From Podarcis muralis (lineage: Eukaryota): a stretch of DNA of 64,000 bases. The notes under the pieces were generated by a model that did no database searches, had not been told where the DNA came from, and worked only from the letters and a program-made list of their open reading frames with translations. This document shows, in pieces, positions 3,458 through 4,180 of the stretch. Numbering within the stretch: position 1 is the first letter of the stretch; each line of letters begins with the position of its first letter. Location: positions 3,410,001 through 3,474,000 of the forward strand of contig NC_135655.1 in NCBI RefSeq assembly GCF_964188315.1. The letters are read 5' to 3'. The position numbers and the translations under genes are program-made.

Positions 3458-4180
3458 AAAAGAGGCTCTTGGCTCGCCGCGCCCTGACGTCAGCGGAGAG
3501 GGGGCGGAGCTCGGGCGGGCGGGGGCGCGGCGTCAGGGAGAGGGGCGGGGCCTGGGCCGACGCGGGGCACCACGGGAGAGCCTCCTCCTCCAGGCGCAGA
3601 GAGAGGGGGAAGAGACGCTCTTGGCTCGCCGCGCCCTGACGTCAGCGGAGAGGGGGCGGAGCTCGGGCGGGCGGGGGCGCGGCGTCAGGGGAGAGGGGCG
3701 GAGCCTGGGCCGGCGCGGGGCACGACGGGAGAGCCTCCTCTTCCAAGAGAGGTGGCTCGGCGCGCCGTGACGTCACGGGGGGCGGGGCTGGCGGGGGCGC
3801 AGGGAGACGCGGCGTCAGGGGAGAGGGGCGGGGCCTGGGCCGACGCGGGGCACCACGGGAGAGCCTCCTCCTCCAGGCGCAGAGAGAGGGGGAAGAGACG
3901 CTCTTGGCTCGGCGCGCCTTGACGTCACGGGAAAGGGGGCGGAGCTCGGGCGGGCGGGGGCGCGGCGTCAGGGAGAGGGGCGGGGCCTGGGCCGGCGCGG
4001 GGCACCACGGGAGAGCCTCTTCCTCCAGGCTGCAGAGAGAGGCGGAAGAGAGGCTCTTGGCTCGGCGCGCCTTGACGTCACGGGAAAGGGGGCGGAGCTC
4101 GGGCGGGCGCGGGGCACCACGGGAGAGGCTCTTCCTCCCCTCCAGGCGCGCGTGCGCAGTGGGGCCCGGCCTTTCCCTCC
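3458..4180. promoter_or_regulatory. Bidirectional 7SL/RPS29 promoter, tandem array of five CRE/GC-box units, ending in the RPS29 5'TOP tract
   Basis: TGACGTCA at 3485, 3637, 3768, 3920 and 4073 (period 131-153 bp), each with GGGGCGG boxes; CCTTTCCCTCC at 4170-4180. Confidence 0.85.

Follow-up and report, generated by a model that had tools for sequence, protein, structure and literature searches.

Tandem promoter-like modules between head-to-head 7SL RNA and RPS29 genes in Podarcis muralis

Introduction

Why should a CRE recur at intervals all the way from a 7SL RNA gene to the neighbouring gene for RPS29, and would the recurring copies matter to either gene? This question is raised by a 64-kb stretch of Podarcis muralis DNA (64,000 nucleotides; NCBI RefSeq assembly GCF_964188315.1, contig NC_135655.1, positions 3,410,001 to 3,474,000 of the forward strand), the whole of which was analysed here and is called the window. 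In human, the genes for SRP RNA (7SL1) and RPS29 have a single promoter in common, at which Staf/ZNF143 was detected by ChIP (Anno et al. 2011, PMC3082894), and in mouse Rn7s1 and Rn7s2 adjoin Rps29 and Nemf (PMC11828898). The mammalian 7SL upstream region has a TATA-like box at −31/−24, a CRE at −51/−44 and Sp1 boxes at −90/−52; mutation of the CRE cuts transcription about 2.5-fold, and the contribution of the CRE to 7SL-type Pol III transcription in mammals is put at about 2.5- to 3-fold (PMC7279448).

Results

The 7SL and RPS29 genes lie head to head in two mirrored arms

The whole 7SL and RPS29 cassette is present in the window as an inverted duplication, with arms at about 1594–5368 (left) and 22408–18559 (right). 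Its genes are the following.

3142–3440, minus strand: 7SL (SRP) RNA, left copy (Rfam RF00017; 5′ end extrapolated)
4170–4261, plus strand: RPS29 exon 1, left copy (TOP/TCT-like tract 4170–4180; ATG 4200; start predicted from the sequence)
4727–4826, plus strand: RPS29 exon 2, left copy (vertebrate uS14/RPS29 at 97–100% identity, PF00253)
5107–5245, end approximate, plus strand: RPS29 exon 3, left copy (Leu-Asp-stop, 3′ UTR, AATAAA 5223–5228)
20455–20753, plus strand: 7SL RNA, right copy (RF00017, 101.4 bits, model 148–299 at 20602–20753)
TOP tract from 19991, ATG 19961, minus strand: RPS29 copy 2

In the case of 7SL, an Rfam search of the whole window at the gathering threshold gave no hits, both genes being cut by N masks (3294–3457 and 20438–20601, 164 nt each), and the visible halves were instead matched using an E-value threshold. 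In the left arm, this revealed a match to RF00017 (Metazoa_SRP) of 101.4 bits (E 1.4e-26), with model positions 148–299 aligned at 3293→3142. The masks truncate both 7SL matches at their 5′ side and, by Rfam extrapolation, cover 7SL positions 1–147, with the A and B boxes, together with about 17 nt upstream; they also hide where precisely the repeat unit ends towards 7SL. The left 7SL start, at ~3440, was extrapolated from the 147 missing model positions, with an uncertainty of 1–2 nt. As judged by the Rfam match to its visible 3′ part, a genuine 7SL RNA gene lies directly downstream of the upstream elements in both arms.

In the case of RPS29, the protein search covered exon 2, as a 49-codon open stretch at 4704–4850. 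Ribosomal-protein TOP promoters initiate at a C inside a pyrimidine tract near the ATG. The TOP tract CCTTTCCCTCC, which the sequence-only reading had placed at 4170, was found at 4170–4180, and in each arm it is placed 30 nt upstream of the ATG. The two RPS29 copies are intact, as are the visible parts of both 7SL genes. In the left arm, the gene starts face away from each other at ~3440 (minus) and 4170 (plus), 730 bp apart, and in the right arm those at 19991 and 20455 are separated by 464 bp, so that the distance is below 1 kb in each. Intron 1 of the left RPS29 gene (4262–4726) is extremely G-rich and carries a 16-bp tandem repeat at 4434–4483 (3.1 copies, 97% matches), and this intron is about 80–88% identical between the arms, with many indels.

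The 13-kb spacer between the arms (5400–18550) contains a SCAN and C2H2 zinc-finger gene on the minus strand, with open reading frames for a SCAN exon (12746–13633) and the zinc fingers (9162–9854). A ZNF24-like protein of Podarcis raffonei is the best named relative of the SCAN exon (89% identity), and all named relatives of this exon among the best 120 matches are squamate. Further GC-rich, CpG-island-like segments lie at 46001–48000 and 25001–26000 (GC 0.77, 0.66 and 0.63 per kb).

The gap between the genes is filled by tandem units

The CRE octamer TGACGTCA occurs at 3485, 3637, 3768, 3920 and 4073 in the left array, each coordinate exactly as the sequence-only reading had given it, and at 20082, 20234 and 20403 in the right. 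Eight occurrences in the window compare with 0.22 expected from dinucleotide shuffles, none of which reached eight, the sites being copies inside one repeat rather than independent matches. Tandem Repeats Finder reported a period of 130 at 3622–3875 (84% matches) and a period of 153 at 3753–4115 (90% matches, score 575); these periods and the unit alignments define head-to-tail units of minisatellite size (tens to hundreds of bp). The left array occupies positions 3458–4169 of the window, 712 bp in all, and spans the whole gap from 7SL on the minus strand to the RPS29 TOP tract. This bears out the earlier description of GC-box-rich units filling the gap, here resolved into four units of 152, 131, 152 and 153 bp and an end unit of 124 bp, as listed below.

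3458–3609, 152 bp: unit L1, adjoining 7SL, placed by unit alignment; TATA-like CCAAGAGC (7SL sense) at 3465–3472, CRE at 3485–3492, half-CRE at 3531–3535, four GC boxes, SBS-like 18-mer at 3561–3578 (minus strand), pyrimidine tract at 3581–3591
3610–3740, 131 bp: unit L2, without the 21-bp tail; CRE at 3637–3644, half-CRE at 3683–3687, SBS-like 18-mer at 3714–3731
3741–3892, 152 bp: unit L3, a divergent unit termed B-type; CRE at 3768–3775, half-CRE at 3813–3817, SBS-like 18-mer at 3844–3861
3893–4045, 153 bp: unit L4; CRE at 3920–3927, half-CRE at 3966–3970, SBS-like 18-mer at 3996–4013
4046–4169, 124 bp: unit L5, adjoining RPS29, without one 42-bp sub-repeat and carrying the unique RPS29 core promoter; CRE at 4073–4080, SBS-like 18-mer at 4108–4125, unique NRF1-like palindrome GCGCGTGCGC at 4148–4157

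With the B-type excepted, the units are 93–98% identical in unit alignments. A blastn search of the 64-kb window found the unit nowhere outside the two arrays, so it is not a dispersed repeat, and a search of metagenomes with the TATA-like and CRE block gave no matches. It had been proposed that the 7SL upstream element was amplified at this locus. That proposal stands as regards tandem amplification with a CRE in each unit; it fails as regards the 7SL element alone, since the whole bidirectional intergenic module was copied.

A full unit combines candidate elements of both promoters

In order from the 7SL side, a full unit contains the CCAAGAGC block (7SL sense), a perfect CRE, a 42-bp sub-repeat with GC boxes, a second 42-bp sub-repeat that has a half-CRE (CGTCA) at its start and another GC box, an almost invariant SBS-like block, a pyrimidine tract and a short purine tail. 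Across the modules, the CRE is always single and perfect, a half-CRE is usually present, GC boxes number from one to six, and there is a single Staf/ZNF143-like 18-mer. The modules are themselves composed of 42-bp 'CGTCA plus GC box' sub-repeats, the number of which differs, with three in R1 of the right array and one in each of L5 and R3. The tail is missing in L2 and R1; in L3 and R2, 4 bp of the TATA-like block have been lost, disrupting the box, and the GC-box segment is divergent. The NRF1-like palindrome and the TOP tract are found in the RPS29-proximal unit only, in both arms. We considered whether the unit tail might be a remnant of the RPS29 5′ UTR and rejected this, the MAFFT alignment being too weak (about 8 of 14 positions by eye).

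GC boxes (GGGCGG or CCGCCC) number 16 in the left array; L1 has four, where shuffled versions of it give 1.1 (P about 0.008). The SBS-like 18-mer lies on the minus strand, exactly once per unit, and has CCCR at positions 3–6 and C at position 12. We regard it as a candidate ZNF143-type site on the basis of these two core positions and of the consensus, which it matches at 15 of 18 positions, with 0.01 such matches expected per shuffled unit. The same core positions are highly conserved in 18-bp Staf/ZNF143 sites (PMC3082894).

The left array has a GC content of 0.77 and a CpG observed/expected ratio of 0.92 (0.86–1.02 in each unit), and at 712 bp it exceeds the thresholds for a CpG island (more than 200 bp, GC above 0.5, observed/expected above 0.6) on all three counts. 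Because this ratio is about 1 in every unit, the inner units would lie in an unmethylated and presumably factor-bound domain.

One reading of such composite units has the inner ones working as separate promoters, whose pyrimidine tracts would serve as additional TOP-like Pol II starts and give RPS29 mRNAs with long leaders or upstream non-coding transcripts. Pyrimidine tracts of at least 9 nt occur in all units but L2 and R1 (3581, 3864, 4016 and 4129), downstream of the CRE, GC boxes and SBS-like site, while another, at 3734, straddles the L2/L3 junction. Moreover, the interval 3458–4192 (735 bp) contains neither ATG nor CAT on its plus strand, and is thus without a start codon on both strands, so that longer leaders would be free of upstream start codons. 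The RPS29 sense strand of the same interval is strongly G-skewed (344 G versus 203 C) and carries five G-quadruplex motifs, the other strand carrying none. Against this, the best TCT/TOP match, like the NRF1-like site, is confined to the last unit, and the absence of ATG would be expected to be partly a matter of chance in DNA of 77% GC that is repeated five times. We therefore think it unlikely that the inner units act as promoters in this way.

The ends of the array look like single-copy promoters

At the 7SL end, the proximal CRE (3485–3492) lies at about −45/−52 of the extrapolated start, with the same geometry in the right arm. The sequence-only reading had put it at about −44 to −51, which agrees within the 1–2 nt uncertainty of the start, and its statement that the CRE of mammalian 7SL genes sits near that position matches the published −51/−44 (PMC7279448). 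The TATA-like CCAAGAGC is at −25/−32 and has a CAAG core in common with the rodent 4.5SH box of PMC7279448. GGGCGG motifs at 3502, 3513 and 3517 correspond to −62 to −82 and fall within the −90 to −52 interval of the Sp1 boxes, and on this side the GC boxes as a whole run between about −62 and −108.

At the RPS29 end, the elements of L5 lie at −90/−97 (CRE), −45/−62 (SBS-like) and −13/−22 (NRF1-like) relative to the C of the TOP tract at 4170. The geometry of the right-arm end is the same as that of the left. By its sequence, each array end thus looks like the normal single-copy promoter of its gene, with three inner units in the left array and one in the right appearing as extras.

Downstream of 7SL, copies of its final 42 nt and of the terminator recur in tandem, interleaved with (ATT)n tracts. 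There are two 42-nt copies in the left arm (2965–3006 and 3143–3184, one of them extra) and four in the right (20711–20752, 20870–20911, 20977–21018 and 21162–21203, three of them extra, one with 3 mismatches). As tandem copies are present on both sides of 7SL, in numbers that differ between the arms, the locus appears to be generally prone to tandem gain and loss.

Unit number differs between the arms

The right array (19992–20437) has three CRE units.

20269–20437, 169 bp: unit R1, adjoining 7SL copy 2, with three 42-bp sub-repeats; CRE at 20403–20410
20117–20268: unit R2, B-type, 97% identical to L3; CRE at 20234–20241
19992–20116: unit R3, adjoining RPS29 copy 2; CRE at 20082–20089, NRF1-like site

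Whereas L3 and R2 are 97% identical to one another, each is only about 80% identical to the other units (A-type). Since this divergent B-type unit is common to both arms, the heterogeneous array is older than the inverted duplication. In a global alignment of the two arrays, 3458–3536 has no mismatches besides a 4-bp indel. This is followed by 110 bp present in the left arm only (3537–3646), bounded by the CGTCAG of the L1 half-CRE and that of the L2 full CRE, and then by a segment (3647–3953) with 97% identity between the arms. A further 151 bp of the left arm (3954–4104) amount to one unit, and the last 88 bp have 3 mismatches. R1 corresponds to L1 plus L2 minus 110 bp, and would most simply represent that pair after an out-of-register exchange between sub-repeats. 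We also tried a single-deletion model for R1 based on Hamming distance, which was confounded by the 4-bp indel, and the global alignment was used in its place. The unit number of five versus three is a difference between two paralogous arms, and since two repeat-mediated indels, of 110 and 151 bp, set these arms apart, copy number has changed after the duplication. The proposed origin of R1 suggests that both arms descend from an array of at least four units.

These comparisons also bear on whether the unit number might be an artefact of assembling GC-rich repetitive DNA, as an array of 77% GC with units 93–98% identical could lead one to suspect. The distinctive unit variants stand in a consistent order that recurs in the second arm, both length differences have clean repeat-mediated breakpoints, and the array, at less than 750 bp, is well within one long read. 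In addition, 20 runs from 7 studies contain parts of 3458–5400, a result that is not specific to the array. The arm flanks are 95.4–96.1% identical, which argues for an old, genuine array and against a recent slip. An artefact is on these grounds very improbable.

Arm-to-arm divergence does not point to special constraint on the inner units

If the inner units were maintained for their function, one might look for excess conservation of the array. Between the arrays, 12 of 469 sites differ (2.6%), as against 4.2% in the neutral flanks, a difference that is not significant (P=0.17). Three of the 12 fall inside SBS-like 18-mers and two lie in or next to GC boxes, the SBS-like core being kept in every unit. 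No differences were found within CREs, where about 0.8 would be expected, and this too is not significant. We accordingly dropped the idea of selection on the inner CREs, since the array diverges about as fast as the flanks and its inner units show no indication of being specially constrained.

Clear conservation between the arms is confined to 7SL with the first 75 bp upstream of it. When 3047–3536 was compared with 20848–20363, the visible 7SL halves and these 75 bp were identical besides the 4-bp upstream indel, the only mismatches in the span being at 3051–3052, downstream of 7SL, while neighbouring non-coding DNA is 4–5% diverged. This identity would reflect either purifying selection or gene conversion.

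The main rival to the reading that we prefer, and a strong one, is that the array is a neutral promoter minisatellite, in which the gene-adjoining modules alone matter and the inner ones are inert passengers of slippage or unequal exchange, tolerated as long as the end cores are intact. It would account for intact genes in both arms despite five versus three units, for an arm-to-arm divergence of the array like that of the flanks, for the loss of position-dependent pieces from inner units (the TATA-like box in L3 and R2, the tail in L2 and R1) and for the tandem instability on the other side of 7SL (one extra copy on the left, three on the right). It does not by itself lead one to expect a perfect CRE in 8 of 8 units, even in the B-type ones that are ~20% diverged, when the bases beside the octamer vary, although this alone is not significant, nor a CpG observed/expected ratio near 1 in every unit; furthermore, intact consensus sites in open chromatin are normally bound by their factors. 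We regard wholly inert inner units as a serious possibility, though a less likely one than the reading that we prefer.

At the other extreme, and in line with the copy-number tunable enhancer of the sequence-only reading, the array might be an adaptive VNTR, variable in the population, whose unit number tunes SRP RNA and RPS29 output and couples the two. Copy number can evidently change, being five in one arm and three in the other; a CRE gives about 2.5- to 3-fold in mammalian 7SL-type Pol III transcription (PMC7279448), and one Staf site can drive bidirectional transcription (PMC3082894). However, the array lacks excess conservation, the CRE of this promoter class acts at a fixed position near −50, with action from −200 to −640 undocumented in the cited literature, and the two gene pairs per haploid genome would buffer any single array. 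Tuning by unit number is in our view improbable.

Discussion

The reading that we favour, and consider probable on the sequence evidence, is that a conserved CpG-island promoter common to the head-to-head 7SL and RPS29 genes has been expanded into a minisatellite of ~152-bp modules, the ends of which would serve as core promoters and the inner modules as added activator sites. Under this reading, unequal exchange or replication slippage would have expanded the whole promoter module in this squamate lineage. The outermost modules would do the position-dependent work: at the 7SL end through the TATA-like box (−25/−32), the CRE (−45/−52) and the GC boxes (about −62 to −108), and at the RPS29 end through the CRE (−90/−97), the ZNF143-like site (−45/−62), the NRF1-like site (−13/−22) and the TOP initiator. 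The inner modules, lying in the same presumably unmethylated CpG island, would probably still bind CREB/ATF and Sp1, and perhaps ZNF143. They would then act as added activator platforms and as a spacer between the zones of Pol III and Pol II initiation, which would lie 730 bp apart in the left arm and about 460 bp apart in the right. On output they probably have a modest, possibly even negligible, influence, and changes in copy number are for the most part probably nearly neutral.

A bolder version would hold that the array is squamate-specific and varies in length between individuals, that all modules are occupied by CREB/ATF, Sp1 and ZNF143, that copy number jointly sets the supply of SRP RNA and RPS29, and that an amniote-wide linkage of 7SL and RPS29 reflects selection for coupling. 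We give little credence to this combination of claims. Returning to the expanded CpG-island promoter, its likeness to known systems is partial in each case.

Promoter VNTRs that multiply transcription-factor sites include the MAOA-uVNTR, the TYMS 28-bp repeat and the INS VNTR. Like these, the array consists of head-to-tail units with factor sites directly upstream of a gene, in changeable copy number; unlike theirs, its unit is much larger, at 131–169 bp, and is a complete bidirectional Pol III and Pol II promoter module, and the variation seen here is between arms. Type 3 Pol III promoters such as those of U6 and 7SK combine a PSE/TATA external promoter with a distal enhancer that carries Staf/ZNF143 sites. 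The SBS-like sites at −121 to −685 of 7SL, if bound, would resemble the distal Staf-dependent enhancer of U6 and 7SK, but 7SL, unlike those genes, has an internal promoter. Furthermore, because the array contains neither ATG nor CAT, an octamer motif is impossible in it. An action of Staf on U6 is mentioned in PMC3082894.

A close parallel is the human RN7SL1/RPS29 pair as described in PMC3082894. Both loci are head to head, less than 1 kb apart, GC-rich and without a canonical TATA box, and both have a Staf/ZNF143-type site, ChIP-positive in human and a sequence candidate here. By that published description, however, the human pair has one promoter, whereas the module is present five times (730 bp) and three times (about 460 bp) in the lizard arms, the whole gene pair has a second, inverted copy and the genome is that of a squamate. 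With the mammalian class of 7SL, 4.5SH, EBER and vault genes (PMC7279448), the locus has in common a proximal CRE, GC boxes and, as a sequence candidate, a TATA-like octamer before a bona fide 7SL gene. It departs from that class in its non-mammalian host and in having four further CRE modules at −197 to −640, positions for which no function is documented there.

In the literature, we found no paper on tandem amplification of the 7SL/RPS29 module or on its occurrence in squamates, and none dealing with 7SL genes of lizards or with minisatellites of bidirectional promoters that corresponds to this case. What is new is the tandem amplification of the module and its presence in a squamate; the head-to-head 7SL–RPS29 pair was already known.

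If the inner modules are active, the locus would be a natural allelic series, in which one to five CRE/Sp1/ZNF143 modules separate a Pol III gene from a Pol II gene. One could then learn from it whether Pol II-type activators act on Pol III genes from a distance, and whether the output of SRP RNA and of a ribosomal protein is coupled via common DNA; otherwise, it would be an ordinary GC-rich promoter minisatellite. Regardless of function, the 7SL–RPS29 head-to-head pair and the layout with a CRE near −50, both described in mammals, are also found in a squamate, and several-fold changes in length are tolerated by a bidirectional promoter of the housekeeping kind.
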